Origin: Oculina patagonica
Taxonomy: Eukaryota
Length of the DNA: 64,000 nucleotides
Direction: 5' to 3'
Assembly (NCBI RefSeq): GCF_052425735.1
Contig: NC_135765.1
Location: 14,260,001-14,324,000 of the forward strand
Part shown: in pieces, positions 13,116 through 43,049 of the stretch
Layout: every line of letters begins with the position of its first letter
Numbering within the stretch: the stretch's first letter is position 1
Notes under the pieces: generated by a model
The model's database searches: none
What the model saw: only the letters and a program-made list of their open reading frames with translations
What the model was told of the DNA's origin: nothing
Position numbers and translations under genes: made by a program

Positions 13116-13816
13116 CTTTAGCATATAGGCCGGAAATGCATGCACAGTCTAAAAGCGTACACATTTTTACCAATAGGTAACAATTGATTTTTTTTGTAGA
13201 CGAAGTTTTATGTACTGAAGACTGTAACGTAGTGAAAATCACCCTTTACTCCAGTCGCAAGTAATGTCGTTGATTTTCTTTTTTTTCGACAAATGAAAAA
13301 AAGTCGGCCACATTATGTGTGATTTTCGCTTCTGTTATTTCTAAGTACGTGCATTTGCCAATGTTCGACACAACTTCATTCACTTAGAATACATTTGAGT
13401 GGAAATGTAATGTTTACGCAGTCACTTGCTTTAAAACATGACGCTTGCATATTGTTTGACTATTTTGTTTGTGTGTATAAAAAGCTTTTTTCCACAGGAG
13501 AATTGTATGGGTTTTTTTTAGAAAATAATTTTAAACACGGGAATGTTTCATTTCGCCGATGCCTAAATATCTAATCTTTGAAATACGAAATGAACCTTGA
13601 ACACCAAAAGCATTTGCAACATTCATTCAATTTTGGTGACTTTTTATTATATTAAGTACTGCCCGAAACATACTGAAATATATAATTTGACTTGCTAAAC
13701 ATATTTACATTGTGGAATGTATAATACAATTTACTCAACATTTTAGTTGTGTTATTTTTTTCCATCGCCACTTTCTATCGACTTAAGCATTTTTTGTACT
13801 ATTCCTGCAATGAAAT

Positions 13817-14042
13817 CTCGAACATTTACCGAAGGCGCCAATTTAAAATTGCCATAAGCTTACGTCAGTATTATTGCGAAATCTTGGAACGCTTTAAAAA
13901 AAAAAAAAAAAAAAATTAACGATACGTCCTTGCTTTATAGATAATTAATGTTAGATCCATTGCTCGAACATTTACCGAAGGCGCCAATTTAGAATTACCA
14001 TTGTAGCAGCTTACGTCAGTATTATTGCGAAATCTTGAAACG
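13817..14042. repeat. Two-copy ~146-bp tandem duplication
   Basis: ctcgaacatttaccgaaggcgccaattta...agcttacgtcagtattattgcgaaatcttg at ~13817 and ~13963. Confidence 0.85.
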
Positions 14043-14466
14043 ACTTGTTTTCCAAAATTCAACGATAAGATCAGATGGTTAATTTAAGATCCATAGCTAG
14101 CGGATTTTTCCAGACATATGGTGCAGAGAACTCGAGTTGCTAAATGCTGAATTCGAAAATTAAACTGTTTTTGGTCCCCAGCGTCTGATACCTACCAGGC
14201 GGTTTTATAACATGTGAAACGTGTTTATGAAGACAAGACACGTTCGTGGTGTAAACATTTGCAAGAGCGTGGTGCGAGGTTCAGTAATACATCCCGCGTG
14301 CAATGCGCGAGTATCCTAACTTTTTCCCAACAATTAACGAGGTCAGGAGCCGTGGGTGTGGGGACTTATCCTTTTTCCCTAAAATTAAACAGGGACAAAA
14401 AATCCCAAAAGCTAACTAGCCAAGAGCTTAGCTTTACTGACACTACGTACTAAGCTTTAATAACAC

Positions 14467-16259
14467 CACAGGGTGCCCAGACAAACTGTTTGTGTATGGC
14501 CTGTGCACATTTACATTTTTATAGAGAATGTATGGAATTTACCGAATGGTTTGTAGAATTGCGTAAAATGGTGCAAAACATTAACAAATTTGTGATGAGT
14601 AAATGTTAAGTTTCCTACCTTTTGTGTAGTGTCGTTCTTTTGGCTCAAAATGGCGAATTTGAGCCGACTGAAGGGTATTTTGCTTTCGCTGTTTACTATA
14701 CATCTAATTATATGGAAAGGGTGGAAACTCCAACAGCTCCAAAGTAGAACACTTCCAGCGCCGAGCCGATTTTCGACCTGATAATCCCATCGCACAGCTT
14801 TCAAACTACGCACCAGAAAAGAGGAAGGCTTGACTAATCTTCTCGTATCATTTGATCGAAAATTTATCCAAACGGTCCGGAACAAGCCCTCAAACGAAAA
14901 CGGGTATCCAAAATTTTTAAGCCGTCCGAATGCGTAGCACCAATTTGTGGTGCCGAAGGGAAACGCTATTCCCCAGCCTCTTTGTGATTGGATACAATTG
15001 AACAATGGTCGTTCAAGATTTTGTTTCGTGGATAGGGAGGCAAAGGCAAAACAAATACTCAGTAGTATAGGGATTGATGCCAATAGTGCGACACAACCTA
15101 AGGACCCTCGCGCAAAATATGGCATTTATGACGGCGATGCCGGAAGCGATGTATTATCAGTTAAATATGGGTCGTTGTAACTTGTCAGTGCGGCGAAGTA
15201 ATTATGAAATATTTATACTGACTTAAGAAACGAGCAAGTACCTACATCTAGTCGGTATGAGTTCATTTTTAAAGTTAGCTAGCTTCAAATAAAAGTCAGC
15301 GTTCATTATTCAACGAAAAAAAAATATTTTACAGCCCTAAAAAAATATCAGACTTTAGTCATCTCACCTAGTTGTTTTACAGAGATTGCAAAACAATACA
15401 CCCACATGTGAAACTCTCGTGCGAAACCGTTGTTGTGATTTGCTATTCTTATGTTAAGGTCCGACTGATTGGGAAAACCCCGCGAAGTTCCATCACGACT
15501 TTCGTAGCGCAGAAAATGTAGGCGATCGCGAGTTTGCGGAAAAGTGGGATTTTTTCGGGACATACGAATATGGCAAGGTACTCGTGTTTGAGTTCCTTTA
15601 TTTTTCTTTCTGTTTTTGATGTTTTAAACATCTATGGCTGCAATCACCGAAATAGTACTCATTTTCTAGGTTCGAAACCTTAACTTCTGAACAATCTGAA
15701 ATCCTACACCTAGCCGAAGCTGGGCACAATATTCTTGTAACTGGGGAGGGAGGAACAGGGAAATCTTTCAGTGTGGTGAAGGCTATCAACAGTTGACTGC
15801 TAAAGCAAGGGAAAAAGGTTTTCATTGTTTGTGGAAGCGGTGTTTCGGGAAGAGTGTATTTGGAAGTAAATAAACAGACGTCAACGGCGCACTCCTTTTA
15901 CTTTGACGCATACAAGTTACAACGACGCATATTTAAATGATAATGCACGCTTCCGGCATCGCCGTCATAAATGCCATATTTTGCGCGAGAGTCCTAAGGT
16001 TGTGTCGCACTTTTGACATCACTCCCTATACTATTGAGTATTTGTTTTGCCTTTGCCTCCCTATTTTTATTGCCATTTTGAGCCAAAAGAACGACACTAC
16101 ACAAAAGGTATGAAACTTAACATTTATTCATCACAAATTTGTTAATGTTTTGCACCATTTTACGCAATTCTACAAACCATTAGGTAAATTCCATACATTC
16201 TCTATAAAAATGTAAATGTGCACAGGCCATACACAAACAGTTTTTCTGGGCCCCCTGTG
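14467..16259. mobile_element. Non-autonomous DNA element with long terminal inverted repeats enclosing a PIF1 helicase fragment
   Basis: Left arm ~14467..15203 is the reverse complement of right arm ~15896..16259 (right arm lacks ~14660..15030). Termini CACAGGG...CCCTGTG; flanks ataacac / ctaacac. Confidence 0.8.
15662..15902 (+). pseudogene. PIF1-family (SF1B) helicase N-terminal fragment with an in-frame stop
   Basis: Manual translation: FETLTSEQSEILHLAEAGHNILVTGEGGTGKSFSVVKAINS*LLKQGKKVFIVCGSGVSGRVYLEVNKQTSTAHSFY. This shows the Q motif, Walker A, motif Ia and TxHSF. Confidence 0.82.
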
Positions 16260-16444
16260 CTAACACCACTTACGGGGGTCCGGGAAAGTATTACTCAACT
16301 CGGAAAATATGCGCGTTTTATATGTTAATCCGTTGACTAACTTAAGGTGTGTGAATTCACTGGTCGTGAGTTATGGTCCATTTACAACTCGTACTTTAAG
16401 CATTTTCCTTAAATACTCCATTCTTGGGTAAGCCGTTTTCCTCA

Positions 16445-16612
16445 ATTGCTGGTTTGCAGCTGACCGCACAGCAGCCATGTTGGATGACAGGAACAAAGCG
16501 TTCTCCTCCGTTGGGAACTAAACTTTTTTATTATGCAAATTCCGCAAAAACATGTTTTATTGTTTTGTCATCCAACATGGCCGCCTTGTCACGTGGTTGC
16601 AAACCAAGAATA
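16445..16612. mobile_element. Short MITE-like element
   Basis: ttgctggtttgca...gccatgttggatgaca / tgtcatccaacatggc...tgcaaaccaagaa inverted termini. Confidence 0.65.
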
Positions 16613-17243
16613 CTAGAAACAACGGACTTCTGTAAGGATTCATTTAACGTCACAATACTTTCAGATGGTAAAAAAGGATAATGGTTGTGTAAAACGTAGG
16701 CCGGTGTATAAAAATCAAACCCCTTGAACTTTTCTTTTCAAAACACTCGTGATAGCTACGTACTTAGAACGTACGTAAACTCCTCGAAACTGTTGTGTTG
16801 TGTCGTGTTAGCTCAGTGTCATTAAGATAATTGTTAATCATTCTTTTTTTTTTTAACTTTTAAAGAGTCCACCACGGAGTTTGGATCAGGGTAATAAATA
16901 AGCTTTGAAAGAAGAGACTTCTTTTGCAGGGTTGACACATTCTTTATTTTTATCAGGCGCCTTAGTTAAAACAATATCAAACTGTCATTTTCAATCTTGC
17001 AGCCCGGTCTTGCAACCTACAAGCTATCCTAAGCAATCGCCACAGAACTTTACACAAAACAAGTAAAAAGCGTGGAGACCCGTTCTAACTACTGATAAGT
17101 TGTTTACATCGATTCGAAAGGTCTCTGACAACTGATACTTCGGACAGAAATTTTCACTGACACCGGAAACCCAAAATTATTGACACCTGTCAATTACAAC
17201 TCAAACCCCTTTGTATTTCATTTCTCCCCTCTAAAGAACGCGC

Positions 17244-18308
17244 CTACTCTCCGAGTGCTCTCTTAGGAACAGGAACCGGCCCAACCACTTGGAAACTAAC
17301 AGCTGGGGAAGAAAGGTGAGCTAGCTTTTCCTGGATACCGGTATTTGCGTTTACATGTATGTTACTAGCACGTCCTTCGGTATATTCTAAGTAATCGTCC
17401 ACTGCGACAGTGTACGTTCCAGGCTTGACCATGTTGTAACCAGAAGAAAGGTCAAACTTCGACGAGAGGGTCTCCCCAGCAGCAATGGTCACAAAATTAC
17501 GACGCCCCGGATCTTCGCGCTTCATCATGATACCTTCAAATTCCAATTTTTTCCCATCTCGGGTGACGACCAGACCTTTCGGTCCAAGCTTGTTCAGCGG
17601 TGTGTTCCACGTGAGCACAGAATATGCGCGGTCACCGATGTTCTTCAAGTGGAAATCACACTTGACATCCTCGGTAGTTTGATAAGAAGGCTTACACACG
17701 ATGGAAGCGGAGAAAAGCCTGTTAAAGCAAACATGAATTTGTCAACATATGGGCGTCAAACAACAAATTGGGTAACAAATTTGAGCCGAGTATTTTTGCC
17801 ACTAGAGAAATCTTCAAAGAACCTTTGGAAGAGCTTTCATTTCTAAGCAGGAAAACAACAAGAGCGGAAACAACAACAAAATCAACAACAACAACAGAAA
17901 CAACAAGAACAATGACAACAATTTCATCAGACATTAAAAACACCAATGATTAAACAACGTGAATCTCCGTATACTTGTACTCAGGCCGAAGTGTACTGAA
18001 CCAATTCTTTTCGTGGAATAATTGACATCGTGAATGGTAATTCATGGACAGTTATTTTTGTTGAGGGGTCGAGAAAAATAAACCAACAACGTGTTTGCAA
18101 ATTCTCGGAGATATTTTCACGTCAGTTCATCTCCTTCCTGCCTTTATCTGCCTTTCTTAATTTTTTTTTTATTAAGTGTATTTTTTTTAACTACAATCAC
18201 TCACTTGGTTTCCAGAGAATTCGACCGTACAGTGTCGTCTCCATTTACCGTCATTGCAACTAGCAGGAACGACCAGACAAGTATCTTTGCCAGCAACATG
18301 ACTTCCAT
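17244..18308 (-). CDS. Gene B: secreted M35 propeptide-only protein (no catalytic domain), complement join(18205..18308,17244..17718), 192 aa; could be a truncated pseudogene
   Basis: Exon 1 on minus: MEVMLLAKILVWSFLLVAMTVNGDDTVRSNSLET-AA|gtgagt. Acceptor tttaacag|G at 17719, same phase-2 intron as paralogs. Exon 2 aligns with the whole propeptide of genes A/C/D. TAG falls in the LG[QE]xARSLE motif. AATAAA at ~16948..16943. Confidence 0.75.
17853..17922. repeat. Degenerate (ACA)n microsatellite in gene B intron
   Basis: aaaacaacaagagcggaaacaacaacaaaatcaacaacaacaacagaaacaacaag. Confidence 0.8.
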
Positions 18309-19920
18309 CTACAATTATTTCATTGAAAAGGAAGGAAAAGAGTGAGCTGTAACTGACGTTTATGTATCTTGCTCCTTCTGTGTCTGTTGCTTTGGCTTGT
18401 GTTTTCTATTTTTTTTAAAGGGCGAAGAGTTCATTGTCGAAGACACTCTTCTCCGAGCGTGCCAGCTTCTTAAGAACTACAGGTAGATAGCTAATCAGAC
18501 CGATGCGAGAATGCAGTAGGTAGATCTAAGAATTAACCGAACTCTGTCGAAAATAGGGGCTAAGTTAGAGTTTTTCCCGCCGCACCGTTGCTGCAGAAGT
18601 TAAAACTGCTTGTGATTGGTAATTAGTGGCAGGTCACTTTTTTCTAGTAGCGATGAAAAATGAGAAAAATATGAGAACAACATCTACTTGAGTAACAGAT
18701 AGCTTATCGGAGTTGGAATTGAACTATATTTTAAGGTGGCTCCAAGAATTAAAGAGACTCTGTTGTAAATAAAGCTTCATTTAGCGGTATTGCCGCCACA
18801 CCATTGTTACATATATTAAAATTGCCTGTCAGGATTGTATAAAATAAGCAAGTTTCTCGATAGTAATTGATCCGTTTGCTTCAAGTTATTTTTTTTCCAA
18901 TCACGATGAATAATGTGAGTACAACATATTTTTGTTAATGATTTTCGCTATTCTAGAAATTATGCTTGACAACAACTCGAAAACGAAAAGGTGAAAATTT
19001 TGCCCGAAAAGTTCTTAAAATATATATTTTTTAAAGCTGGTTGTAATTTAAGCGAGCCAGTGAGTTTCAAGTCTTCAGTTCATTTGGAAGATGTACGGAC
19101 GTTTTTCTTAATTTGTGCGAGCCTGAGAACTGCATTTTGATCAAACTCTGAGCCTTGTCATAGTGGAACATCAAAAGAAGAAAGTAAAAACATAAAAATA
19201 TCGAAGATCCAATACCAGCATTACTGAACGATAAAAACAAAAACAATTATCATCTTTAAGAACTTTATGATGTATAAATTTGCACCTCGTAACAACCGTT
19301 AACGGGTACGGGTATGGCGATTCAAAAAGTCGGCATACTAACTGAAAGATGGCTTTAACAAGATATCTCTTATTAAAGTAAAGGCTATGCAACTGTTAAC
19401 AACTATCTTATTGTGGAGAGGCAAGTTTAAATGGACAATAGTGTAAACTTACCATTCTTAACTTGGGTTTGTTCACTGTAAAGTGTCTGCTAAGCGTGTG
19501 TATCACCCAGTTTTACCTTTAAATTGTATATTCATTTCTTCATAACGTTAAAAAAAAACATTCTTGTTTTTACATGGCAACCACACTGCTGTTAAGAACA
19601 AGTTTTGTAGTGATTGAGGCTGTGTCCCTGTATGGTCGTCTGAGGGCATTGTGTGCGCGTTTGAATAAAGTACAGAATTTTACAATGTCTTGTATGAAAA
19701 TTAAAAAATAATCAAAACTTCTTGATAGTGATTGGTCATTAGGTGCAAGTTATTTTTTCTAATGAAAAATGAGAAAAATATGAGTGCATCATGACTCTCG
19801 TTATTCTCAAATACACGTTTACTTCAAAATTTAACATACAAAAAGAACTTCGGTATAACCATATCATGCAGAAAACCTACTGAAGCGCACATTATGCAAA
19901 CAAAAGCATACCTCTTACTT

Positions 19921-20163
19921 TGAAAATGAATATATGTGATGTTATGTATTTGAGCTGCTGGAGAAAGATGTAACACCTGAAAGATCTTCGAAGTTATGAA
20001 CGCAAATTAAACAGTTGCGAAAAGAAAGCCTAAAAAAGCCTGAACTTTTTACAGGCTTCTTTTCGCAAGTGCTTAAGTTGCGTACATAACTGCGATGATC
20101 TTTCATGTGTTACATCTTTCTACAGCAGCTCAAATACATAACATCACACATATTCACTTTTAA
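19921..20163. mobile_element. Fold-back (near-palindromic) MITE
   Basis: tgaatatatgtgatgttatgtatttgagctgct..agaaagatgtaacac...gtgttacatctttctacagcagctcaaatacataacatcacacatattca; arms ~110 bp. Confidence 0.88.
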
Positions 20164-22114
20164 ACTGAAAAGTAATGTTTTTGCTTGCTCCTAAACGAAT
20201 ACGGTGACCCCCCTTTTTTATTTCAAAATTTAACTTCCCTGACAGTAAACAACAAACCTGCAAAGTTTGGTTGAAAATCTATGAGCAGTTTTATTTCCCA
20301 GGAATTACCCTAATTTGCTCGAACCAGAGAACTGCATGTTGATCAAAACTGTTTGGAACTTCAAACACAGAAAAGTATCATCTTTCAAGAATTTTATGAT
20401 CTGTAAATTTGCACCTCGCAAACTACCATAAATGGACGCAGGATAAAAGAATCAAAGGTATTTTCTTACCACCAAACGGCTTGTCATGAAATCAAGATGA
20501 TTTCTTAAGTATATTAGTGTGCAGTATTCAACATTCATTGACCCTGTTTTGTTTTTATACGGTGATAAGTTTCTTGACCAACGCATTTAACTGTTTAATC
20601 GATCTGCTCAAATTTTTCCGCACGCAAAACCAAACGTTCCTAACAATAATTGCTTTCAAAATAGCCCCCGATACCATCTCCAACACCTGAAAAAGTGATT
20701 CTCCGATTAGCTTTAATATGCGTTAAGGAGATAAAAGCTCCTGCGATCGAGAAAGGTTAGATTGAAAACTATACATTGTACGAAAGGAAGCGTGAGCTAG
20801 TTCCGGACCATTTCTTCCATTTTTTTCGTTTCGAAACATAAATAAAATTGTGAGATACTAAGTGCTTTCATCAGGGTCTGCGTTGATGCATTTGGGCTTA
20901 AATTTGCATCTTTGTGGTCACCAAATTTGAGACACGTTAATCGTAATTTTCTTGAACAGATAGCAGTAAAAGATGGAATTGAACCGATCAATTATTAAAA
21001 AGTAGGTTATATATGAACATTTCACAGTACAGCCTACACGTAGTTCTACTCAATTTCAAGTGCATGGGTTAAGCTTGCATGGCGATTAAAAAAGTCGGCA
21101 TACTGATTGAAAGGTAGCTTTTGCACTATCCCTCTTATCTGAGTAGTGGCCACAACTGTTAATAATTATCATATCGTGGAAAGGCAAGTTATAAAATGGA
21201 CAGAATTGTGAGCTTACCGTTCGTGGGTTTACTCGCTGTATAATGTCTGCTAAAGGTGTGAATCACCCAATTAAGCCTCTATAATGTTTATTTATGCTTT
21301 AAAACATAAAAACATTCTTGGTTTGACATGACAACCATACTGTTGTTAAGAACAAGTTTGTAGTTGATTGATGCTGTATCCGTTTATGGTTGTTTGAGCG
21401 CATTATGTGTGCTTTTAATAATCTACAATGAATTGAAAATGGAGTGCTTTTAACAAATTCATGTTACTCAAGCGAAAAGAAACAAACTTAGTTGAGGGGG
21501 ATTTAGTGTTTTGCCCATAAATTTTAGTGTTTGCTGTTACATTGGCCAATCTTTTTAATGTTTATTGTTTCCGGAGAAAATACTGTTAAGTGTTTTGTGT
21601 TTGGTGAGTTTTTCGTGAAAAAATTTATCATTGTAATTTCTTTTCTGCTCTTCCAAATCGGATAACATCACTCATAAACTTAGAGAAAATTTTCGGTTTT
21701 CTCCTCAGAAATCTTCGGTAGTCTTCGGATATCTTCAGAAGTCTTCAGCAGTGTTCGGTAGACTTCGGAAATCTTTCGAACTGATCGGAAATCGTCGGAA
21801 AATGGCCGAAAACTTCTTTATATACTAAACAAAATAATATTGGCCTTTTTGAGCCTTTTTTGTCTCTTTCTGGATAAAATTTACTGTTACAGTGAATTTT
21901 TTACTGTTAATGTTAAAATGCCCAAAATTTTACTGTTTCATGTTACAGAACCAAAAAATTAAGTGGTTTTTTTTTGGTATCGAGGTACCCCCATTCAGAC
22001 TCCCTAAGTTTAATGACTGTAGTACTGTTGTTTGGTTTAAAAACAACGTTAAAAGAAAACTATATACGCAATAGCAAAATGACCAGATTGATAAGTAGAA
22101 AGTAATTTACCAGA

Positions 22115-22297
22115 GCTAGAATCCCGATTGCTCCAATTCAACCCTTGGTTTTTCAAAACTCCCGAGTTGTCGAACCAATTTTTGTTTCCCTTGGATAGTA
22201 CTTTTCCTGCAATTTTACAGCTGATTTCTCGAATCTCCCGATTTTTCGAAGCAATTTTCGTTTTCTCTGGGAAACGTGAAATCGGGATTCTTCTGTA
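22115..22297. mobile_element. Degenerate pogo-like MITE (related copies at 38624..38815 and ~62270..62350)
   Basis: agaatcccgatt...aaatcgggattcttctgta; internal tcgaa motifs. Confidence 0.55.
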
Positions 22298-22319
22298 TTT
22301 AAATAATAAGTCGAGTGGG

Positions 22320-23010
22320 TGTTATGGACGTTTCAGTTTGATCTAAACAACGTGATGGTATATATGAAAAAGCGCAAATTTTGTTGAAAAGCAAGGAAAG
22401 CGAGCGAGACCGTTTTTTTCTTCCGAAATGTTCCTCGCACAATCTCCACTAAAGATGTCTATATTCCGTGAAATTGTTACAAACGAAAACGGTTGGTGGC
22501 GAGATCCGTAATAATAACGTTATTAAAATTTATATTCCTTTTGCGAGTCAACTTAAGCAGTTTACTTGTTCAAGGCGCACGGCTGTCATCATCAAGACTA
22601 CAAAATGATTGCGTTTAAAACGAAGCTAAGCTCAGAATCGAAATAATGGACACGCATGGCGCAGATTAGGGGGACAAGCTTTAGTATATCGCTCTTCCCG
22701 TGAATTCTTTGCTGCTCTCGCCTTTATTCAGCGGTTTTTGTCGCACATCAACATGTTCAGGCTGTTTCAATTAAAGCTCAGTAAAGCCGTGAGTTGATTT
22801 CTTTTACCGTGAGTGATATTTTTTTATCGCCAGTTGGTTTTTGTGTCATACACTGATTTATTTACGAGAATAATGTCGCTTTCGTTGCGAGTTTAGCATT
22901 TATCGATAGTTGGAAATAAGTGAATCAGGAGACGCCGGTCGCATTTTGCAGCTGACCAATTGACCAATGACCAATTGACTTATTGAATTTTCTTAATTTA
23001 AAAAATGGAC
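22320..23010. repeat. ~700-bp block duplicated in direct orientation at ~26140..26830
   Basis: ggacgtttcagtttgatct, aagactacaaaatgat.gcgtttaaaacgaagctaagctcagaa and aatgtcgctttcgttgcgagtt occur in both. Confidence 0.85.
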
Positions 23011-23021
23011 TGAACGAAATG

Positions 23022-24660
23022 GTATCTAGCTCAAGATATCTATATGATGCATAGGATTACGCAAATCCGCCGATCCATGCTATTTTTGGCCAAATCCGTC
23101 AACCCGCCACTATTTTCGTTCAAATTTAAATTCGCACTTACTACTTGAAAATTGTTGTGGTATATTTTCAGTCCCAGTAGTTGCTGTTTCTATGTCAATA
23201 TTTAAAAAAGTGTCGTTTCATTGCTTCTTTCTTCGACAATTTTGCCAACATACCGATAAAGACCGACCAAAAAGAACCGAACTTGCTTTAGTATCCACGA
23301 TCCGTACGTCCTGACATGAAGAGTCCAAAATCAGGACCAAAACTCTCAGCTTATCTGCGATCCACCAACCTATTCCCTCCCTTCAGTCTGTAATGTTTAC
23401 TCACAATCAGATTAAAGCGAAGAAAAGCCCGTTAACATAAAGTACGGTGAATAAATATAAGTAGCTCCATTCAGTTTACTCTCAAAATTGAGCTGAAACC
23501 CTAAACATTTCTCAAAAAGTAATAAGAATATTTAACAACATCAAATATAGCATGCACGATCGATCCACTGTTAATTACCCCATAACGTTATACCATGTAT
23601 TGTAAACTTACCAGAATTTTTCTTCAGAGTTCTCTCTTCTCGTAGGTGACTGCTGAGAGTGTGAGCAACCCAACAGGGCCTCCGGCTAGAGTGTTATACA
23701 CTACTTATTGCGTGCAAAAATCTTTACATTCTTCATTACACATACTGGATTGTTGTTAAGAGAACGTTTTACACCAACATATGCTCTTGGCCCCTTTAAT
23801 GATTCTCTGTGGGAGGCTCGTAAGTGCATCAGACAAAAGAGCATTCTTGATTAAACATGGCAAAAACGATTGCTGCTAAAAAAACCTTTTATATCAATAT
23901 ACGCTCTCTCCCTTAATGGTTATTTGTGGGAAATTCATTGACAAGTACTTGCCATGTGGGCACGAAAAGAATCAATAAAAAGTTACTTTAAAGTACCAAC
24001 GAACTCTTGGGATCACAAAAAGAAATGTACTGGAACTAAAAGGATAATTTAATATGTTGTAAACATGTATCTGAAATTATTTACAGCACGTAGTCGATAT
24101 GGTAATATTGTTTGGAAACGTTTCACCGATCACTCCGAATAAAGAAGGTTTTAAACGCTTTTATCGTCAAAGTGTACGTCCTTCTGAAGTTCACATCACG
24201 CGATCAAAACAGATAATGTTGTGCATAATATGTATACAAATAAAACAGATATATTTGTTTAAGAACGCCTAAAACAACCATAAACTTAATGGTTGTTCGC
24301 CTCAAACAGCATTACCTTGATGCTGTACTGACACTTAAGGTCCGTACATCACCTTCTCGAAAACGAACATTTTGACCAGCTTCAAACTTCTCATTCTTTC
24401 AAAATTCATAGGTTTTAAAATATCTCTGTCAAAAAGAGTACTTCCCGGACAATTGTCGGTGCGGCAATTTTCCTTTTCATAAACGGCCGATGCCATTTTA
24501 GCCATGCATATATCATGGTCACTCAATGAACAAGGCTCAAACAACTGGCGCTTTGATGACAAGTTGAACGCATCAACCATATCAGGCGAGCGCGCCACTT
24601 GCCAACACCCAAGTAAGTGCGTAAACTTCGAATCGTCGTTTTCCTTTCCTTGTAGCAGCG
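23022..24660. repeat. Block duplicated in inverted orientation at ~33190..34447 (covers ~23022..24300) and ~29200..29900 (covers ~23940..24660)
   Basis: tatctagctcaaga / tcttgagctagata; gggaaattcattgacaagtacttg / caagtacttgtcaatgaatttccc; gtgtacgtccttctgaagttcacatcacgcga / cgcgtgatgtgaacttcagaaggacgtacac. Confidence 0.88.
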
Positions 24661-27600
24661 AAGACAATAAGCCGAACTCAAGGCAGTAATTATTTAACAC
24701 AAAACTTGTGGCTCTGACATCAACTATTCAGACTAGCCCACGATCAAAATCTATAAATACCATGTACATGGCTTGATGACTGTAGTACCGTTGTTTGATT
24801 TAGGAGGACAACGTTCAACTATAACTATATACGCAGCCAAAAAAAAACAGATCTAGTAGCACAATTTTCTTAGTTGAAAGCACAGTACTTTGTGTAGGTT
24901 TTTTTGCAATAACAGAAAAAATGTTTTGCTTCTTACATTATGAATAACAGTGTCGCTCAGAATATGTTAACGAGCCCAAACGTTGACTTTCAGGAGAAAA
25001 TGTGACACTGCCAAACAGATTCACAGATTCGCAATACTTTTCGGTTTGTTTTCAACTAAAATAAAATTAAACCCTGATGTAGTATTGTATTTTATTCACA
25101 AAATAGGAACAAAGGGGAAAAGGCAAAAGCGGAAGGTGCAGATAGAAATAAAACACGAAAATGAGTCGAATATATTTTAACACTAAAAGCATTCTTCTCT
25201 CAACGGGCTGTTGTAATCTTTTTGTGAAGCGTTAAACCCTTTCCATCTTAGACGGGAACCTCAAATAATCAAATGTAATCTTATAATCAACTTATGATTC
25301 GAAAAGCCTTTCTAATTTTGTGCGAAAGAGTTTAGATAGCATGTCGATAGGCCTTTTCGCGGTTTCTGACACCATCTAGTTTGGAGGGGGAGGGGAGAGT
25401 GGGGAGCAAACACGGTAAAAATTACAGTAATTGTATGGGAGAAGTGGGGAAGCTAATCTCGAACAATTCACGGCAAATTCTTATTCCGAAATGTTAATGA
25501 ATTAAAAACTCAAGACACAGGGCATTTTGATTTACTGATTAGATTTGAAGGATGCAGCCTCCTTATGTTTTTTCGTACATTTGTCTGTAAAGCAGGGCAG
25601 CAGTTCCCGGAAATATTTTGCGACATTTGTGTGGAAATCTTGAAATGCGCTCCTCGCCTCCCAACATAGCCGCATCCTTCCAATTTGATCAACAAAATCT
25701 TCTCCTGGGTATTTTTACCTTTTAGTTCATAAAAATTACAGAACATTAATCTTCTTCAAATTATTGGGCATCGACCTCCCAGCTTTTCCCATATTTATTT
25801 ACTGTAATTTTTGCCGTGTTTGCTCCTCCAACAATGAAGACGCCAAAAACCGTGAAATGGTTTACTAATTGAAAGGTAGCTTGGGAAGTTCTCAGTTTCT
25901 TATAATTATGGCTACAACTGTTAACAACCACCATATTCTGGAACCAGGCAAGTTATTTAAAATGGACAGTATTGTGAACTTACCATTTTTGGATTTATTT
26001 GCTGTATATTGTCTGCTGAGGGTGTGAACCACGAAGTTTTATCAGAGCCAAATTGTATCGGTCGCCCGTCGTATTTTTCGTATCTATAAAAAGGACCCAT
26101 TGACGCCGTGCTAAATTTATTTAAATTATAAATTAACTGGATGATGCGGACGTTTCAGTTTGATCTCAACGGAAAACTTTGTTGAGCGTTTTTCGCTGTG
26201 TGAGTTGAATTAAACGCAAGGAAGGCGAGCGTGACTGCTATTTTCTTCCAGAATATTCTTCGCACAATCTCCTCTAAAGCTGTTTATATTCCGTGATATT
26301 GTGACAAACGAAAAAGGTTTATGGTGAATTCCAAAATAATTGCTTTATTGAAAGTTATATTCCTTTTGGGGGTCAAATAAAACAGTTTAGCTCGGGTTTG
26401 CTTGTTTAAGGCCCACGACTCTCGTCATTAAGACTACAAAATGATGGCGTTTAAAACGAAGCTAAGCTCAGAAACGATCAAGTTCGCTGAAGAACGGACA
26501 AGACCCAGATTAATTAAGGCATCATACAACTTTAGCTCTCGCCTTTATTCAGCGGCTTTTTTCGCACATGAACATGTTCAGGCTTTTTCGTTTAAAGAGC
26601 AGAAAAGCTGTGAATTGATTTCTTTTACCGTGAGTGTGACATTTTTATCGTCAGTTGGTTTTGGTGTCATACGCTAATTTATTTGCGAGAAAAATGTCGC
26701 TTTCGTTGCGAGTTAAGCATTTATCGATAGGTGAAAATAATTGTATCGGTAGACGCCGGTCGCAGTTTCCGTAGCTTTTAAATGACCAATTGACTTATTA
26801 AATTTTCTTAAATTATAAATGGACTTAACTAAGTTGTATCGGCCCCGTTTTGTTCCTATCTTCCCATGATTTTTTTTGCTTAATTTTCCCTTCATTCAGG
26901 CGATATCCATCCTGCACCTATGGCCACCACACTTTTCGTATTTTTGCTGCTTATTTACCAGAATAAAAACATACTGTAAATTCCAGTATATTATTTTTAA
27001 ATTACGGGGATGCTACCCTTTTAGGTTTGCCTAAATCTTTATGTTACCTCTATTGTGTATATTCAATACACACAAAGCATAAGGAAATTTTTCGTTTCAC
27101 ATGCATGAGAAGCACGCTGTTGTTCAGAAAAAGTTTTTAATTCATTGATACTGCATCTCTTTATTGGTTATTTGAACACACTATGCTGTATCCCTCTGTG
27201 GTTGTTTGAACGCATTGTGTGCGCTTTGGATAACGTACAATGAAGACAAAGGGCTTTAAGCAAATTTATTTTATCTTAAAAATAAACGAACAAATAAAAT
27301 AGTTGAATGTAGGTTATACCATTGTTTGTTTTAAGACAACGTTAAACTAAAACTTTATACGCAACAAGAAAAAACAGACTGAGTACTATTATATCTTAGT
27401 AGAAACTATGGTGACTTATGTAATTTCTCCAGAATCGATATCTATAGAAGAAATGGATTTTCCTAATAAACTTGGAATATGCTCCGAATATCACTCAAGG
27501 TGTATTTAAATTATAAAATACGAAAACCCCCTTTCCATTTAACAAGCTAATAAATTTTAGAGTAAAATGTTAATTAAACGCCCTTTCCATCCCAGAGCCA

Positions 27601-30600
27601 AACCACGAGTGACTTGATGTAGTCTTAAGATTTTAGTTTAGTTTAATAGCAAACTATCCTTAAAAAATTATATACTCATGGCGTGCTTTCTCGCCGAACC
27701 CTTTTAATACGCTAAAACACTTTCAAGTGAGAGGAAGTTGAATTGGCAATTATCTGTTAGTATAATAACTGATTCTTCTTTTAGCTCCAGTTATAAACAA
27801 TCACCATTTTCTTAAAGAGCGACATTAGAGCGGGTATTATACAAAACTTACCATTTTTCGTCTCCACACAGTTCTCTAACTGTATCGTGTAAATTTCCTA
27901 CGCCAGGACTCTAAAAAAGGCTTTCGTGCGAAGAAGGGTTTATTCATGTCACGTAAAACTGAACATTTTTTATTTTACATGACAACCAGAATGTTGCTAC
28001 GAAAAGTCACGAAATAGTTATTTCTCAACTGTTTCGTAATCAATAAACCCTCGTCGTAAGCAATGGTTATCTTTTAAGAAGTTGGAAGCACTAACCGATT
28101 TATCTGTCGTATAAGAAAATACCCGACTTTGATTCAAGTAGTCATCGTGTTAAAGGAGTTAAGACGGAAACAATCAGTAAATCGAGTAATGCTAATTTTA
28201 GTTGGACAAAAATCGAGTACCAGAATAATTTAAATCACATTGCGTTATTTTCTACCCTTTCTAAAAGCTAAAGATATAACTAATTCTCCGTGATAACACC
28301 AAAATCAATTCCGTATCAGAACTAGAGGAAATGAATTTCAAAGTTCACAAGAACCATGTAAAGTATTAATAAAATCTCTTACGTCTTTTAAGTGTTCAGT
28401 GGAATTCAGTGAAGCTTCGAAATTCGGTTTTGATGTTTGGTTTTGTTAGAAATGATATTGACAAGATATTTAAAACAGTAACACAGAGAGTTTGCAATAA
28501 GACGTACATAATTTCGGTACATAATTTTGTCCAATAAATACTTAAAGTCCTGGTGGACCCTTTTTTTTTCTCAAGACTAATTTTAATTACATTTGTCCTT
28601 ACAATTTCGACAAATTTTCAAAGAAATAAGTCGTCTGTTTGTAGCACTTAAAACAAATTGAGCTGCAGATAATATGGCGCTGCATCAAGAAAGTCGAAAC
28701 GTTTCGTGATATTTTTCAACCAACTATTAAGGGGTGATGCATCAACCTAACCATAACGTGTTCCTAGCAAGGGAGTGGAGGCCATGCGGTACGAAGAATG
28801 TATACACATGCTACAAATACATTTAGGAGCCTTCTTAGCAAGTGAATTGCACCCGTGATGAAGCGACTGAACTTTAAGTACAAAAGCTAGTAAGTTCGGT
28901 TATTCCTTATAAATTCCGTTTTGGCATCGTACTTTACGGTAATGGTTGCCTACAATAGTAATAAAAGGCAAGGGGGGTCTTTTGCCTTAGCTGGATTTAT
29001 GTGTCTCGACAGATCCAATCGCCTTTTCAATGTCTTACGCTGAACTGTTATATAACTAAATAAAAATACCAAAATTTACGCCGTGATACGTTAAGTACTT
29101 TAAAACTTTTAAATGTATTTAGAGTTTTTGGTCGCGGACAAGGTTTCAGCTCAGTCTGGATAGATTATGACACAGCCACAGTATTTGTGTAAGATAATTA
29201 CTGCTTCGCCTCAAGAAAAAACGACGATTCCGAGTAAGTGGCAAGTGGCGCGCTGGCCTGATATAGTTTTCGCGTTCGACTTGTCATCAAAGCCGGTCAG
29301 TTGTTCGCGCCTTATTCATTGAGGGACATATATACGTGGCTAACATGGCATCGACTGTTTACGAAAGGGAAAATTGCCGCGCCGACAATTGTCCGAAAGT
29401 ACTCTTTTTGACAGATATATTAACCCATGAATTTTGAAAGAATGAAAATTGTTTAATAAGTTTGAAGATGGTCAAAACTTTCGTTTACGAACTGGCAATG
29501 CACAGACCTTCAAGGTTAGTACAGCATCAAGATATTGGTTGTTGGGACGAGCATTCATTAAGTTTATTGTTGTTTGAGGTGTTCTTAAACAAATATATCT
29601 GCTATTTGTATACATATTAAGCACAACATTATCTGTTTTGCTCGCGTGATGTGAACTTCAGAAGGACGTACACTTTGATGAAAAATGCTTTTAAAACCTT
29701 GTTTATTCTAAGTGATTAAGGTGAACCTTTTTCAAACTATATTACCATATCGAATGAGTGCAGCTAATTATTTCAGTTACATGTTCCAAACATAAATTAT
29801 CTTATTAGTTCCAATGAAATTCTTTTGGTGATCCCAAGACTTCGTTGGTACTTAAACGTATCTTTTTATCGATTGTTCTCGTGTCTGCATGACAAGTAAT
29901 TTTATAAGGAATCGGCTACAAAAACCTATAAACACTGCTTGACGCTCTTTTTAACGCCCAGACAATTTGCTGAAAATCCTCCTTTATTCACAGAGATTAT
30001 AAAATAATCGGGCCACTCTGTCCATTTTCGAGGTGGACCATCTTGCTCAATAAACATCTTTCTATTGGTTAAATGTTAAGAAAGGATTTTCTCCACGCTA
30101 AAAGGTTTCCGGCTTCAACACTGGGACACAAAATGCACGGCCTCTTACTGTTTCAAACAGGCAGACAATTGCCCGGGAATCCTTCTTTTTCATAGATATA
30201 TCAAACAGGTAAATATTAATATAATCTTGAATGTCTTGTAGAAAATTTACGCGCCTCGAATTTATATTGACGCATTAGTATGGTAAACGTTGTAGAATAT
30301 GAATATATATAGAATCTACTAAAGGTGCCTCGTAATGCCTGTAAACTTCAGCTACAAGAAAATTTGAGGAACAACTCACTACACATTGACATTCACGACA
30401 AGAGCACACATCTCCAGTTTACACTCATCCACTTCTTATATGTTCACCAGCGCTAGGTGCTTATTTTCTTATTGTATGTAAGGAAAATTGCCCTGTTTAT
30501 TTTCAAAACGAGGATGTTTGTTATTCTTGCCATCCTGCTTTTTACTCGTGAATGCATAATGAACGAGTATAGTGGGGAAGTTGAGCCATCCGTCCATCCT

Positions 30601-35607: not shown

Positions 35608-36831
35608 ATGGCAGTCTGGATAATCTTGTTGATATTGGGGATGGCAAATGGTGATCAAAATGTGGAATTCGATATTTCGGAAACCAAGTAAGTATAGTCG
35701 ACACTATAAGAAAACAAGAAATACTCACAAGTTCTTTTAGACATGAAATCGCTAGAAGGCAGTGTGCAAAAACACTAAGCATTTTAATGTCAGGTTAGAA
35801 AAATTTGAACTCGTCAGTGCAAATATTTCTTTCTTGAAAATGAAGAGTCAAAAAAATCCAAAGCGCTGCATATCACTTTATTTTATCCGCCATTACAGAC
35901 CTTCAAAGCAGTCCAGACCGGGTTGTCACTTGGTTTGGAACACTGACTAGTTCAGATACAGTTGCCCAAAAGTTTCATACATTGGAGGCGGTGCTAAGAT
36001 CAGGGACAATTATTTATTTCTACAGAGGCGAACACTGTTTTTTTTTGCGTATGCTTTTGCAGAAACGCGCTCAATTTGGTTTTGTTCAAATTATGAAATC
36101 TGCCCTTGAAAATCCCTTACTGAATTGTGACCAATTGTACCCGACGGGAATCATTGACACCTTTCTGTAGTAAGAACAAAAGAACTTGTAAAAGTACTTC
36201 TCCATTAACTGCTGTAAAGAGTTCGTTGCTCGTTAGACGATAGAAAAGTCACATTTTAATATAATAAATTCCATTGGTAAAAGTTTTATACATTTTCTCT
36301 TAACCCTATTCAGACCGGGCTTTTTAGGACCTTCTCTGACCATGTAACTTCCAGAATATTTAAGTAATCACAATGAAACTTATAGGATGTATAGTAAGTT
36401 CAAACATCTTTCTTTTGGTATACGTCAAGTGGGATGATGACGTCGCATCACGTGACAATTACATCATGATGTCAAAGCAGCCGCCATCTTGGATCCGCCA
36501 TCTTGGATTTCAAAACTTTTCCAAAATGCCAGAAAACCACCCAAAATTACGGCAAAGTACCCCACAAAATCAATAAAACTGTTCTTAAAGACCGTAAAAA
36601 GGTAAAAATTAATTGCATTTCAGTTAAATTTCATTAATAGAAACACGAAAATTACAAATTTGGGAAAACATGCCTATCAAAATGCCGTTGCCATGGTGAT
36701 GTCAAATTTCTGACACAACATCCTATCCTACCAATTTGTTCCCAGATAAATTTTAGATAAACTCAGAAATTTTGGCAGGGTCTGGTTGAATCGTGAAAAA
36801 GTTATAAGCGTTGAAAGTTAGTGCGTACCTC

Positions 36832-36870
<39 letters not shown>

Positions 36871-38583
36871 TGAATAGGGTTAAATATGCTCATTTCATTT
36901 GGTTTGCACAGAGTTTTCTCTGCCTCCCTTGAGTGTTCACCGAGATACAGAACAACGGAAAAAATTGAATGCCAATTCAATTTAAAGAACGAGGGTCAAC
37001 GAGACTTTTCTGTGCTAAAGTGGCGCACACCGCTGCAGCAACTGACGTCTGATTGCCTGTCTGTCACGCGGAATGGAAACAAGATACCATACGATGGTAT
37101 TTTCATAAAGCGCAGTACTCCTGGCCCTGATCAGTTCGTGCTCGTGGCAGTTGGACAGACCGTGTCATCAACGTTTGAAGTTTCTGAAGGATACGACATA
37201 AGCAAAGCTGGAACGTACTCTATAGCAGTAGACACTTATATAGAATATGTAGTAGGTAGTGTAAAGGGTATGAACGAACCTGGTAAACCAGGTATCCCCA
37301 TCAAAATAAGTCATTTATCTTCGCCATCAGTTAGTTTTCAAGTTGTCGGCAGAAAGGCGGGTTATGGAACTCTGGGGCAAAGGGCTCGCTCTCTTGAAAA
37401 GGAACGTAAACGTACCTTATCAGTTGGGAACTCTCCTAAACGTAGTGAAAGTGTTAATGTTCTTCTAGATCCTGTTGTCAAGGGAAATGCAGCCCAAAAA
37501 GAACTAACAAAAGAAATTCACCGCGCTTCATACCTTTATATAGAATACGCCATTTCAGATCTCCAAAGCAGTCCAGACCGAGTTAGAACTTGGTTTGGAA
37601 CAACAAGTGCAGACTTTCTTATCACAAAGTTCAGGGAAATGGAGAGGTTGTTAAGATCAGATACATTTACTTATGTCCATGGAGGGGATCACTGCTCTAA
37701 CATATATGCATACACTTGGTTAGGATCACGCACAATGCACCTGTGCGGTTTGTACGAAAGTTCCTCAAGTCTTTCGGGATTTTACAGTAAAATGACAACA
37801 ATTGTGCACGAGTTAGCCCATGCTTTAGCTTACATCGACGACATTGGTTACGGTGTAAGTTATTGCAAAAACTTGGCCAAATCGGCCCCTCACCAAGCCG
37901 CTAATAATGCGGAAAACTATTGCTATTTTGCAGCATCGCTATTTCCATTTAACTACGGATTTGATGCTATGACTACATTATCAAACGGTTATACATACCT
38001 GTTTAAAGGGAATATTTACGTGCGATATACAGATACCAATGCTAGAACTCTTAACCCTGCTTACCCAACGCTGATAAATGACGGTTTTGACAATTTGCCT
38101 GAAAACTTTACTCAAGGGTTTGATAGTTTTATCTTTAACAAACTATTCGGGCATCCCTATGCTACAAGGGGCGATCAGTATATTCGATTTACAGATGGAA
38201 AGGCGTCAACAGTTAGTAAAGGGTATCCACACCAAATTTATGGTAACTGGGGTGTTAGCCGTAGCATGAGCACAGGTTTTGATTCTATGACGCAACTACC
38301 AAATGGCAAAACCTATGTCACAAAGGGTCCCTTGTATGTACGGTACTCCGATAAAGCCCTGGAAGTAGTGGATTCTGGGTATCCCAAAAGACTCGATTCC
38401 GGTGAGTGGGGAAATTTGCCAGAAAACTTTAAAAGTGGTTTTGATGCGATGGAGGTCATCCCGAATGGCCAACTTTATGTGATTAAGGGCACTGAATATC
38501 TTCGATATTCCAACCCGTTTTCTCACGTTGACGCTGGGTATCCCTTGCCTATAAAGGGAAATTGGGGAGACGTTCCCCAATAG
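35608..38583 (+). CDS. Gene C: secreted M35 metalloprotease with C-terminal four-bladed hemopexin-like domain, join(35608..35687,36912..38583), 583 aa
   Basis: Exon 1 MAVWIILLILGMANG-DQNVEFDISET-AA|gtaagt; acceptor ttgcacag|A at 36911. Propeptide and HELAH + YIDDIGYG follow, then four GFD[AS]...Y..[KR]G..Y[VIL]R[YF]...[GA]YP..[IL]...[WF] repeats from ~37957. Confidence 0.93.
35855..36050 (+). pseudogene. M35 catalytic-domain fragment stranded inside the intron of gene C
   Basis: cgccattacagaccttcaaagcagtccagaccgggttgtcacttggtttggaac...gctaagatcagggacaattt matches 37548..37670 (cgccatttcagatctccaaagcagtccagaccgagttagaacttggtttggaac...ttaagatcagatacattt). Confidence 0.8.
36304..36879. mobile_element. 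piggyBac-type MITE with TTAA target duplication in gene C intron
   Basis: TTAA|CCCTATTCAGA...TCTGAATAGGG|TTAA. The paralogous introns show the empty site (gene A: cattttctctaaaatatcttttcatttgg). Confidence 0.92.
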
Positions 38584-40053
38584 TAAATTCGTCTTATATT
38601 TGAAGGGGATTAATTGTTTACTTACAGTGGAATACCGATTTCTCGAAGCCTCTATTTCTCGAACCTTCCGTTAACTCGAACCTAGCTAAGGTCGTTTCTC
38701 TTGAGTTTGCCTCACTCAGTCGAACAATACACGATTTTACCCTCGATGTCTCCAGCTCCTAATTTTCGTACCAATTTTCGTATCCATTGGAGGCTCGAGA
38801 TATCTGGATTCCACGGGTTTTTTTCGACTTTGGGATAGTACCAAATGGCTAGAATTTGTAGAAGTTATGGTTCAGCTTTATGACTTAGACGATCTCTAAA
38901 GGAACTGTATGTTCTTAAATAATTCTTGATTTAAGTCCTAATTTTGCTTTCGGGTATATAAATTGCGTGTTATTATCTAATTAATGCTTAGTGCTGTTGA
39001 TGTTTTGCTGTTATTAACAAGTCATTAATATGTCATATGAAGGAAAAATAAATATATTAAAACCATACAATTGTGATGACTGAATTTTTGTACTTTTCTT
39101 GTCCCCTGTCATCCAGGACTAAAATGCAATTTTTGTAAGTTTCATAGCTGTATAAAAGATAAAGCCTTTTTAATCGAATTCTATAGAATGATTTGAAGGT
39201 GTTTTTAATCTCTAAGAAATACTTCCTTAACATGTGCACGGAAATATCTGATGGGTCTTGAAATTGGTTTCCTCTTAATTTAACTTGGAAACACTTGACA
39301 TGTACATGCAAAAATCCGAAGACTCTTGAAATTTGCTTTCCGCCTAACTTTACTTTTCAATTATATCGTTTTAGGGTATTTATTACTATTTGCAGTAAAA
39401 TGCAAGATTTGAGGCTAAAAGCCAAAAACGGACACCGAATTAACTGAAGTCGCCTTGTTCAGATCTTACGCAAGCCAAAGAAATAAACAAAATGAACATA
39501 TGTACACGGATTTCAGTTTTTTCCGGAGATTAAAGCACAAAAAGTGCATTGAGCTACAGGGATTGCAGAAAAAAGGGTGTCAACAAATTTAAAGTTGAAT
39601 TCTAAAGTCGTTTGCATAAGTCGTCCAAAAAAGGAAAGTTTCAGAATGAAAAAAACGGGTTTTTAAAACTGTGATGGCTGAATTTTTTGTCTCTTTTTTA
39701 TCCGCCTTGCCTTATGTTTCAAGAAGTGCAGTTTTCTTTAAGTTCATTTTTAATTTCAAAGAGAACGGCCTTGTCAACCAAATTGTATAGAATGATTTGA
39801 AGGTGGTTCAATCGCTTGGTGACACTTGTTTTACATGTATTTTTTTTTTTCTTATTTCGCTTTTGAGTATTTTTGGTGATGCAAACCATTTAAATCTGGT
39901 AAGTAAAAACGAACATCTAATAAGCTGATCTCCTCTGGGACTCGCCATGGTTAGATTGTAGGCGCTTAAAAATATTACTATTAAAAAAACGGCATCTCGG
40001 TTTCATCTCCATTATAACTTAAAAAAAAAAGATAAAGATACTTTTCGCATTAT

Positions 40054-40560
40054 AACCAGGTATCCCCATCAAAATAATTCATCAATCTTCGCCATCCGTT
40101 ATAGAGTTTCCAAGTTGTCGGGAGAAAGGCGTGCAGGTAATGAAACCCTGGGGCAAAGAGCGCTGTCTCTTAGAAAATAAAATAAACGTACCCTATTGGT
40201 CGAGAACTCTCAGAAACCTAGTGATCCTTTAAATGTTTCTCTTGATCATATCGTCGTGCTATATATATATATTTGCAGCAGAACACGAAGAGACAGAACA
40301 AATTCACTGCGCTGCATACCATTATATAGAATCCGCCATTTTTAGATCTCCAAAGCAGTCCAGACCATCTTGAAACTTGGTTTGAAACAACTAGTTCATA
40401 CTTTGTTTGAGAAAAATTTAAAATGATGGAAAGGCTGTTAAGATCGGACACAATAACTTATGTCTTTAGAGGTCCAAAATGCCGAAGTAAATGGTTAGCG
40501 TACGCTTCAAAAGGATCGCGCAGCCAGAATTTTTTTCTGCGGGTTTTACTAGTTCCTCGC
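40054..40560 (+). pseudogene. M35 pseudogene fragment (end of propeptide plus first half of catalytic domain)
   Basis: aaccaggtatccccatcaaaataa, ctggggcaaagagcgc, gatctccaaagcagtccagacc and gttaagatcggacacaataacttatgtc, with frameshifts and stops. Confidence 0.88.
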
Positions 40561-40574
40561 AAGTCTTAAGGGAT

Positions 40575-42680: not shown

Positions 42681-42710
42681 GCGGTATGTGGTCCAAATGG
42701 TATAAGCTCG

Positions 42711-43049
42711 AGGGCGTAGCTAGGGAAGGTCCTGGGGTGCCGGTGACCACCCATCCCCCCTTTGTAGAATATATGTTTAAAGTCAATAACGTACAAATCT
42801 TATAGTTCAGGTGGCAAAATTAAAACGCACGAATCTAAAGAATTAACATGTCATATTTTTGTTTTACTTTCCAGTGCTTATCCGAAAAAATGTCACTTTT
42901 AGTAAACACAGCTGGATGTCGACATGAACATCTGGTAAGAACCCTCTGTATAACACAGTGTGACAGACAGTCGTGACATACTCCCAAATTCCCCCCCATC
43001 CCCCCCCCCCTCCCCGTCAATTCAAAAATTCCAGCTAGCAACGCCCCTG
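42711..43049. mobile_element. Possible hAT-like MITE
   Basis: agggcgtagctag...ctagcaacgcccctg termini with C-rich subterminal tracts; TSD not clean. Confidence 0.5.

Follow-up and report, generated by a model that had tools for sequence, protein, structure and literature searches.

Gene B is a short, two-exon gene on the minus strand of a 64,000-nucleotide stretch of the genome of the coral Oculina patagonica (contig C8, positions 14,260,001-14,324,000; hereafter the window, in whose coordinates positions are given). It shares the window with three full-length genes, A, C and D, for zinc proteases of the aspzincin (M35) family, and RefSeq annotates it as the uncharacterized LOC144663891, with a product of 193 aa. 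An original prediction, made from the letters of the window alone, had proposed that gene B may be a secreted protease propeptide that is kept by selection without a protease attached to it. Its gene model, comprising the ATG, the two exons, the splice sites, the signal-peptide exon and an unbroken frame of 192 aa, was reproduced in our analysis: the exons at 18308..18205 and 17718..17244, joined across a GT/AG intron, give a coding sequence (CDS) of 579 nt that encodes 192 aa and ends in TAG. The parts of the gene are as follows.

18205..18308, minus strand: coding exon 1, 104 nt, with the ATG at 18308-18306 and the signal peptide; ends ..GAA ACC AA before the donor GTGAGT at 18204
17719..18204, minus strand: intron, 486 nt, GT..AG, phase 2, with the acceptor AG at 17720-17719
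17244..17718, minus strand: coding part of exon 2, 157 codons plus the TAG at 17246-17244
17280..17717, minus strand: propeptide β-sandwich (exon-2 residues 1-146), a homologue of the propeptide of the bacterial aspzincin AsaP1, under purifying selection
17508..17537, minus strand: loop E-G-I-M-M-K-R-E-D-P (exon-2 residues 61-70), predicted to lie in the protease active-site cleft

The N-terminus was judged by eye, rather than by a predictor, to be a signal peptide, with a hydrophobic core followed by VNG and then, after the presumed cleavage point, DD. The annotated 5′ end of gene B differs between databases, GenBank giving a protein of 235 aa and RefSeq one of 193 aa that begins MMEV. The full-length genes and other protease pieces against which gene B can be compared in the window are these.

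8668-8745 and ~9979-11049, plus strand: exons of gene A, a full-length protease (PF14521)
~35608-35688 and 36912-38583, plus strand: exons of gene C, a full-length protease (PF14521) to which hemopexin repeats are added
51770-51847 and ~52292-53353, plus strand: exons of gene D, a full-length protease (PF14521)
35847-36038, 40056-40533 and 41859-42643: pieces of aspzincin pseudogenes, spread over several frames, one of them just upstream of the second exon of gene C

In genes A, C and D, exon 2 encodes the propeptide, then a linker in which dibasic sites lie, and an Aspzincin_M35 domain (PF14521, E 1e-25 to 1e-27); a signal-peptide exon of the same design precedes exon 2 in these genes and in gene B. 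The expectation that all four genes share one splice phase was borne out in full for gene C, in which the position and phase of the intron equal those of gene B and both genes read ...GAA ACC AA before the gt; for A and D, exon 1 was aligned with that of gene B up to the same ..ETK/ESK end. As predicted, gene B is the outlier: identity between its exon 2 and the full-length propeptides (A, 10000-10440; C, 36910-37350; D, 52316-52756) is 48-50%, compared with 66-68% mutual identity of A, C and D over their whole length. The exon-2 product gave no PF14521 match in a Pfam search, and its only resemblance there was a weak one, under the cut-off (E 5.4e-4), to the N-terminal propeptide part of PF02102 (profile positions 42-139). 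Behind the stop, tblastn with gene C as the query found no catalytic remnant between 11091 and 17199, and a profile of the linker and catalytic domain run over 11100-17300 returned noise only (best E 0.14, 1.6 bits). The same profile detected the frameshifted fragments at 39800-42800 with an E of 4.6e-27. Because a PF14521 match is absent, the open reading frame (ORF) ends inside the linker and no remnant lies downstream, gene B is not a peptidase.

The genome of Oculina holds four such short genes (B, B2, B3 and B4) and about 12 full-length genes, all on C8. The aspzincin genes fall into two groups, at 13.27-13.31 Mb and 14.06-14.35 Mb of the contig, and all four short genes lie in the second; no catalytic domain was found beside any of them. 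A protein search with exon 2 returned gene B itself, three more short proteins of Oculina (88, 86 and 75% identity) and dozens of proteins of 113-216 aa from other coral data, including Acropora millepora LOC122946893. Short homologues are thus present beyond Oculina: Acropora millepora and A. cervicornis have them (174-191 aa), as do Stylophora pistillata (150 aa) and many coral assemblies. The two Acropora isoforms, X1 and X2, differ solely at the N-terminus and both end FQVVL, and the 174-aa copy of A. cervicornis carries the wrong label ‘Extracellular protease’. The RefSeq gene models of the family are short in three genera. At seven loci from other corals, of which 2-8 kb downstream was covered, no catalytic domain follows the short gene on the same strand; at two of the seven, full-length protease genes lie close by on the opposite strand, as in the Oculina window.

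To place these sequences, a careful maximum-likelihood tree of 47 propeptide domains was built. In this tree, 19 short sequences, including those of Oculina, Acropora and Stylophora, form one clade with support of 95/87 (98 in a quick tree), and the full-length genes from the same genera are placed in other clades. One short protein lies outside it: P0220, of 159 aa, from a coral assembly, ends just past the propeptide and groups with the full-length type, whose residues it carries (TSDC, KRSNPGPDQF). It is either a separate truncation or a fragment of a gene call. Robust and complex corals separated at least 245 million years ago (PMC5730576), and, since Stylophora (robust) and Acropora (complex) are both in the short clade, the short-gene lineage predates that split. 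Gene B is an intact and probably working member of a scleractinian family that is at least ~245 million years old.

The position of the stop codon bears on how this family arose. Directly behind the TAG of gene B lies the following feature.

17217..17243, minus strand: relic of the pro-mature linker, with ARSLEGRN after the TAG and then GAA where the ancestral TAA of the family stood

That ancestral stop, nine codons past the TAG of gene B, is common to several species. The full ending ...ARSLEGRN-TAA is found in B4 and at three loci in two other coral assemblies (L018, L020 and L021), and the TAA is kept as a relic behind newer stops at two further loci, including the Acropora type (genomic locus L024). 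The TAG of gene B is present also in the paralog B2, which stands at a synonymous divergence (dS) of 0.17 from B, and reads CAG in B4. B2 has a still earlier TGA, and B3 has an earlier TAG together with TGG at the position of the gene B TAG. Moreover, the pocilloporid type, the Acropora type and two other lineages have their own earlier stops just past the last strand (..FQV..). On the sequences compared, the TAG of gene B is secondary and the truncation itself old. The caveat in the original prediction that the stop may be recent thus holds for this TAG and fails for the truncation, and the TAG is not private to gene B. The repeated, independent arrival of stops behind an intact domain indicates that the tail is dispensable and decaying and that the domain is kept.

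In A, C and D, the codon aligned with the ancestral TAA is AAA, which encodes the Lys of the first N-K-R dibasic site, and the founding event was therefore likely a single nonsense change. The family would have originated when a protease gene was duplicated and the duplicate gained such a change at this Lys codon; its product would then have ended roughly where a convertase would free the propeptide. The catalytic part may have been lost afterwards, and the leftover linker tail shortened repeatedly by earlier stops, the TAG of gene B being one of them.

Transcription was assessed with Logan contigs from two runs of one study (runs X1 and X2), whose RNA origin is on record as a guess. Their contigs cover 17097-17735 and 18204-18319 and almost nothing else within 16600-18700, and the splice predicted for gene B is present in contigs of run X1 as a joint, 17717->18204, with CT..AC ends. 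Exon-only coverage together with a splice joint is the pattern of spliced RNA. However, the contigs are mostly 90-95% like gene B and few reach 99% or more, which makes their assignment to B insecure and implies that most come from paralogs or another individual. Two of these few, contig records 6 and 15 (17614-17718), differ from gene B at 1 of 105 bases, whereas B2 and B3 differ from gene B there at 8 and 5 bases. In a contig of run X2 that crosses the acceptor at 17718, the 17 letters of exon 1 differ from B at two places and from B3 at one, and this near-identical contig therefore stems from B, from an allele of it or from a converted copy carried by another individual. In Acropora, a single Logan contig of 1036 nt holds a complete spliced CDS of 174 aa, its stop and a 3′ untranslated region (UTR) with a decayed linker and AAATAAA. 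The short-gene family is transcribed and correctly spliced, and the same is probably true of gene B itself; of the transcript evidence sought for gene B, exon-only coverage and the exact 17717/18204 joint were obtained in the two RNA-type runs, and the assignment to B rather than to a near-copy was not secured. Among the contigs examined, none runs past the stop to a catalytic exon. Splicing past the stop is also at odds with the Acropora mRNA, which continues into a 3′ UTR, with the short RefSeq models in three genera and with the seven loci that have no catalytic domain downstream.

At the 3′ end, a short element is found, exact or slightly altered, ~40 nt past the ancestral stop in most B-type genes.

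17176..17187, minus strand: GGTGTCAATAAT in the 3′ UTR of gene B, containing AATAAT at 17176-17181; the corresponding site of the Acropora mRNA reads AAATAAA

From this recurrence, GGTGTCAATAAT is likely the poly(A) signal of B-type genes. An AATAAA does lie downstream, as predicted, at 16943-16948, ~300 nt 3′ of the gene B stop; as the 3′ end of gene B it was rejected, because the contigs end near 17100-17140, and the closer AATAAT is the likelier signal. No contig covers the interval between 16884 and 17096, although contigs cannot prove absence.

At the 5′ end, the contigs depart from the genome exactly at 18307/18308. This divergence, together with the MMEV start in RefSeq, implies that a further 5′ exon is probably spliced to the AG before the ATG. 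The RNA contigs have three loose ends: one matches the window at 2767-2796 (and more weakly at 4297-4326), and the other two have no match in the window. The site at 2767-2796 fits the leader of B3, a paralog just outside the window; with blastn, no copy of the leader module was found near gene B, in 19260-28010. Five homologous modules of ~140-250 nt, in both orientations, occur in the window at 1467-1605, 2700-2950, 4143-4393, 5366-5552 and 6665-6913. The module at 2700-2950 (minus strand) ends ..TCTTGTGAA, followed by GTAAGT, and RNA-type contigs join TCTTGTGAA, with two mismatches, to the first letters of a B-like coding exon. This module probably serves B3 as its 5′ leader exon. Since copies in the opposite orientation face gene A, leader or promoter modules may be common to short and full-length genes.

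Selection was measured as the ratio of non-synonymous to synonymous change (dN/dS; Nei-Gojobori, 144 aligned domain codons). Across all 55 pairs of short genes, dN/dS ranges from 0.12 to 0.52. The median for the propeptide region of the full-length genes is 0.34, and the free propeptide is therefore as constrained as one that works within a protease. Gene B gives 0.36 against B2, 0.35 against B3 and 0.42 against B4 (binomial p against neutrality 0.006, 0.002 and 0.004, respectively), and p falls as low as 5e-7 against copies from other species. In 11 genomic copies of short genes, the 146-codon domain contains no disabling lesion. Together with the multi-genus clade, these results support well the original description of gene B as purpose-kept. 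That all short genes are dead protease remnants, as a missing catalytic domain and a stop inside the linker might suggest, is scarcely tenable: the clade spans the complex/robust split with its domain frames intact, dN/dS lies well under neutrality in the range just given, spliced mRNA is present, and the true protease fragments in the same window, damaged as the original prediction had noted, have their pieces split over different frames.

A milder version of this doubt concerns gene B alone, which could be a young, redundant copy drifting to loss within a functional family, as one of three recent duplicates (B, B2 and B3) with shortened tails. The premature stops of these three genes do differ in their places relative to the ancestral stop, transcripts specific to B were not secured, and the terminal branch of gene B carries ~6 synonymous and 8-9 non-synonymous changes (omega ~0.4), a total of ~15 that is too few to show selection or to exclude relaxed constraint. 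By contrast, the domain of gene B has neither a stop nor a frameshift, its splice sites and signal peptide are intact, its low dN/dS against B2 and B3 departs from neutrality, and the tail has been shortened independently where the gene clearly persisted, in the Acropora and pocilloporid types. We consider drift of gene B to loss improbable, and its sequence gives no hint of it.

The closest solved relative of the short genes by sequence is the zymogen of AsaP1 from Aeromonas salmonicida, whose structures are 2X3A, 2X3B and 2X3C. A profile of the short genes matches residues 34-162 of 2X3A with an E of 1.3e-16, and gene C matches the zymogen over both propeptide and catalytic domain. An AlphaFold model of gene B is all-β, with a predicted local distance difference test score (pLDDT) of 81, and in a fold search with this model the top four Protein Data Bank (PDB) matches were AsaP1 zymogen chains, with E from 8.6e-9 (2X3B, 146 columns) to 7.9e-8. 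Gene B thus resembles the AsaP1 propeptide in sequence and in fold, and the G..(I/M)KR..P loop of the short genes aligns with IKRAAP of AsaP1. They differ in that the AsaP1 propeptide is part of the protease chain, whereas B comes from a gene of its own that encodes a signal peptide and lacks a catalytic domain. Inhibition by the AsaP1 propeptide is reportedly the subject of a 2016 paper in FEBS Lett.

The Bacillus intracellular proteinase inhibitor BsuPI (PF12690, 3ISY), itself a small β-sandwich, bears a weak likeness to gene B (Pfam E 0.078, fold E 1.1e-3, Atlas 0.85). Placement of gene B in the BsuPI family is not supported, as the Pfam score of 13.4 bits compares with a gathering cut-off of 22.9 and all of the scores are under their thresholds.

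The exon-2 domain of B was modelled in a complex with zinc and the following domain, in three runs with three controls.

37444..37953, plus strand: catalytic aspzincin domain of gene C (residues 187-356, HELAH at 308; PF14521 E 4.4e-25), the partner in the complex model

The complex scored 0.89, compared with 0.01 for the best control, and the runs agreed in at least 95% of contacts, with a partner pLDDT of 88. The co-folding proposed earlier therefore gave, with the catalytic domain of gene C, a favourable model. In the calibration, which is mostly microbial and was run without a ligand riding along, 51 of 78 solved complexes reached the mark applied to such scores, and so did 2 of 108 mismatched pairs. 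In the modelled complex, the loop of B at residues 61-70 (EGIMMKREDP) pairs with strand 271-279 of gene C, and K66 (codon 17522-17520; K102 in RefSeq protein numbering) contacts H308 and E309 of HELAH and A342, E343 and C346 in the NAENY segment. The core of this loop is strongly conserved: G62, K66 and P70 are invariant in 25 coral sequences, and within the short clade entropy is zero at K66, E68 and P70, with G62 and R67 invariant or nearly so. At positions 61, 64, 65 and 69 the loop varies strongly in the short clade (entropy 1.9-2.4), and the first of these does not vary in the full-length genes.

These observations suggested that gene B, as a member of its old scleractinian family, might encode a secreted, free aspzincin propeptide that inhibits the clustered proteases in trans, and we lean slightly towards this reading. 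The secreted β-sandwich would bind mature aspzincins of the same cluster as the cognate propeptide does in the zymogen, placing the loop G-x-x-x-K-R-E-x-P in the active-site cleft with its invariant Lys near HExxH and the Glu of NAENY. B would then serve the coral as its own inhibitor, or buffer, of protease activity. For gene B, inhibition, binding in vivo and the identity of the target protease are what we infer, with docking support at the level of a model. More tentatively, and at somewhat under an even chance, the whole pre-split family may consist of tight-binding inhibitors of their own clustered, Lys-directed zinc proteases, in which the fast-changing residues that flank the Lys-Arg anchor tune individual copies to individual paralogs.

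Several points weigh against trans inhibition by gene B, in addition to the few changes on its own branch and the loose assignment of the contigs. The high model score may reflect memory of the solved AsaP1 zymogen and does not discriminate which family member is bound; since a like complex has already been solved, a pass of the model amounts to zymogen likeness and is no proof of binding. Conservation at the predicted interface does not differ significantly from that elsewhere in the domain (p 0.11 in the short genes and 0.68 in the full-length genes), only the loop core being invariant. Moreover, the short clade has fixed differences from real propeptides (KRE for KRS, Gly for a conserved Cys and TRDG for TRNG), which possibly signify a changed function.

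The last point leads to an alternative in which the family is real and conserved and the β-sandwich serves another role, directed at microbial Lys-specific aspzincins or at some other extracellular partner. In its favour, the short clade has fixed residues of its own (E68, D54, G48 and N38) and has lost the Cys conserved in real propeptides, the variability of loop positions 61, 64, 65 and 69 would suit varied or changing targets, and homologous aspzincins are bacterial virulence factors, AsaP1 being an example (PMC12924839). However, the short genes lie inside protease clusters in Oculina and at two other coral loci, the core of the active-site loop is invariant and the model docks B on a coral protease, and we regard such a role as unlikely.

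The original prediction had also offered a chaperone function. Propeptides of secreted proteases often assist folding, and B-type proteins could act mainly as folding chaperones in trans for catalytic domains rather than as inhibitors; the zymogen-like docking pose would suit this. A review describes effects of propeptides on expression (PMC11985622). Yet every catalytic-domain copy in Oculina except fragments, ~12 in all, adjoins its own propeptide, and no client lacking one was found. Because no protease is without a propeptide of its own, this half of the earlier claim became the less likely one, and we give it little credence.

Among inhibitors of serine and cysteine proteases, stand-alone propeptide-like proteins are an established kind; examples are yeast PBI2 and fungal POIA1 (MEROPS family I9), and mouse CTLA-2 and insect BCPI/crammer (I29). 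A further case is Plasmodium SUB1-ProM, which is encoded beside subtilase genes and is a potent and selective inhibitor of SUB1 (PMC6993865). Gene B resembles SUB1-ProM and the I9 and I29 types in being a separate, conserved, propeptide-only gene beside proteases, whose product is predicted to sit on the active site as a cognate propeptide would. It differs in that the enzyme is a zinc aspzincin rather than a serine or cysteine protease, in its unrelated β-sandwich fold and in that inhibition by the coral proteins is only predicted. No Pfam match pointed to homology with I9 or I29, and the fold matches were the AsaP1 propeptide and other β-sandwiches; gene B is thus an analogue of these inhibitor families and not a member. 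To our knowledge, no propeptide-derived inhibitor family has been described for an animal metalloprotease or for aspzincin/M35 zinc proteases, and a literature search found no relevant paper on coral aspzincins or on these coral genes.

Comparable arrangements occur in bacteria. On a bacterial contig that also carries transposases, a 346-aa Aspzincin_M35 gene is followed, 170 nt on, by P0065, a propeptide-only paralog of 169 aa that keeps a TLGQQQR linker (L027:3788-5510). A stand-alone homologue of 160 aa, P0072, lies on a phage-like contig of dense small genes, near an Acb5-family gene (L028:5001-5483). The 100 nearest Atlas clusters have no Pfam family in common; for the three shown, all from bacteria, the representatives measure 158-184 aa and the feature scores are 0.95-0.96. 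No names are on record for the bacterial short homologues. Unlike the coral genes, in which the loop Lys is fixed, the bacterial and phage stand-alone homologues, 29-38% identical to B, have K, R, S or Y at that position, followed by an invariant Arg. Since the short genes of corals have their origin inside the coral clade, truncation in bacteria and in corals appears to have happened separately.

The coral short genes are at present labelled ‘uncharacterized’ or, wrongly, ‘extracellular protease’, and correct annotation matters for work on coral transcriptomes and proteomes. If the inhibitor reading is true, corals have kept a protease/anti-protease module for at least ~245 million years, and the full-length enzymes, some with hemopexin repeats, are under an extra layer of extracellular control. 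The occurrence of the same design on a phage-like contig and, in a bacterium, next to an aspzincin gene suggests that an unnamed protein family extends more widely; again if the reading is true, the coral genes would be one case of a theme that recurs in bacteria and phages. As a natural scaffold for inhibiting Lys-N type enzymes, such a protein could also have practical use.

Two observations concern the neighbouring full-length genes. The frame of gene D (52292-53425) closes right after the catalytic domain, and weak hemopexin-like remnants lie behind it at 53476-53622 and 55707-55766. A near-identical copy of gene D, 33 kb further on (G000:C8:14345446-14346483), has the same TGA at the end of the match, and the pair suggests that a gene already without its hemopexin part was recently copied by segmental duplication. 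Finally, a third Cys, nearly invariant (..TSDC..), adjoins the predicted interface in the propeptides of A, C and D, and the same site is an invariant Gly in all short genes. Counted from its sequence, the catalytic domain of gene C has four Cys, which could pair among themselves. The third propeptide Cys could be a latency feature resembling a cysteine switch, one that the free propeptides have dropped.

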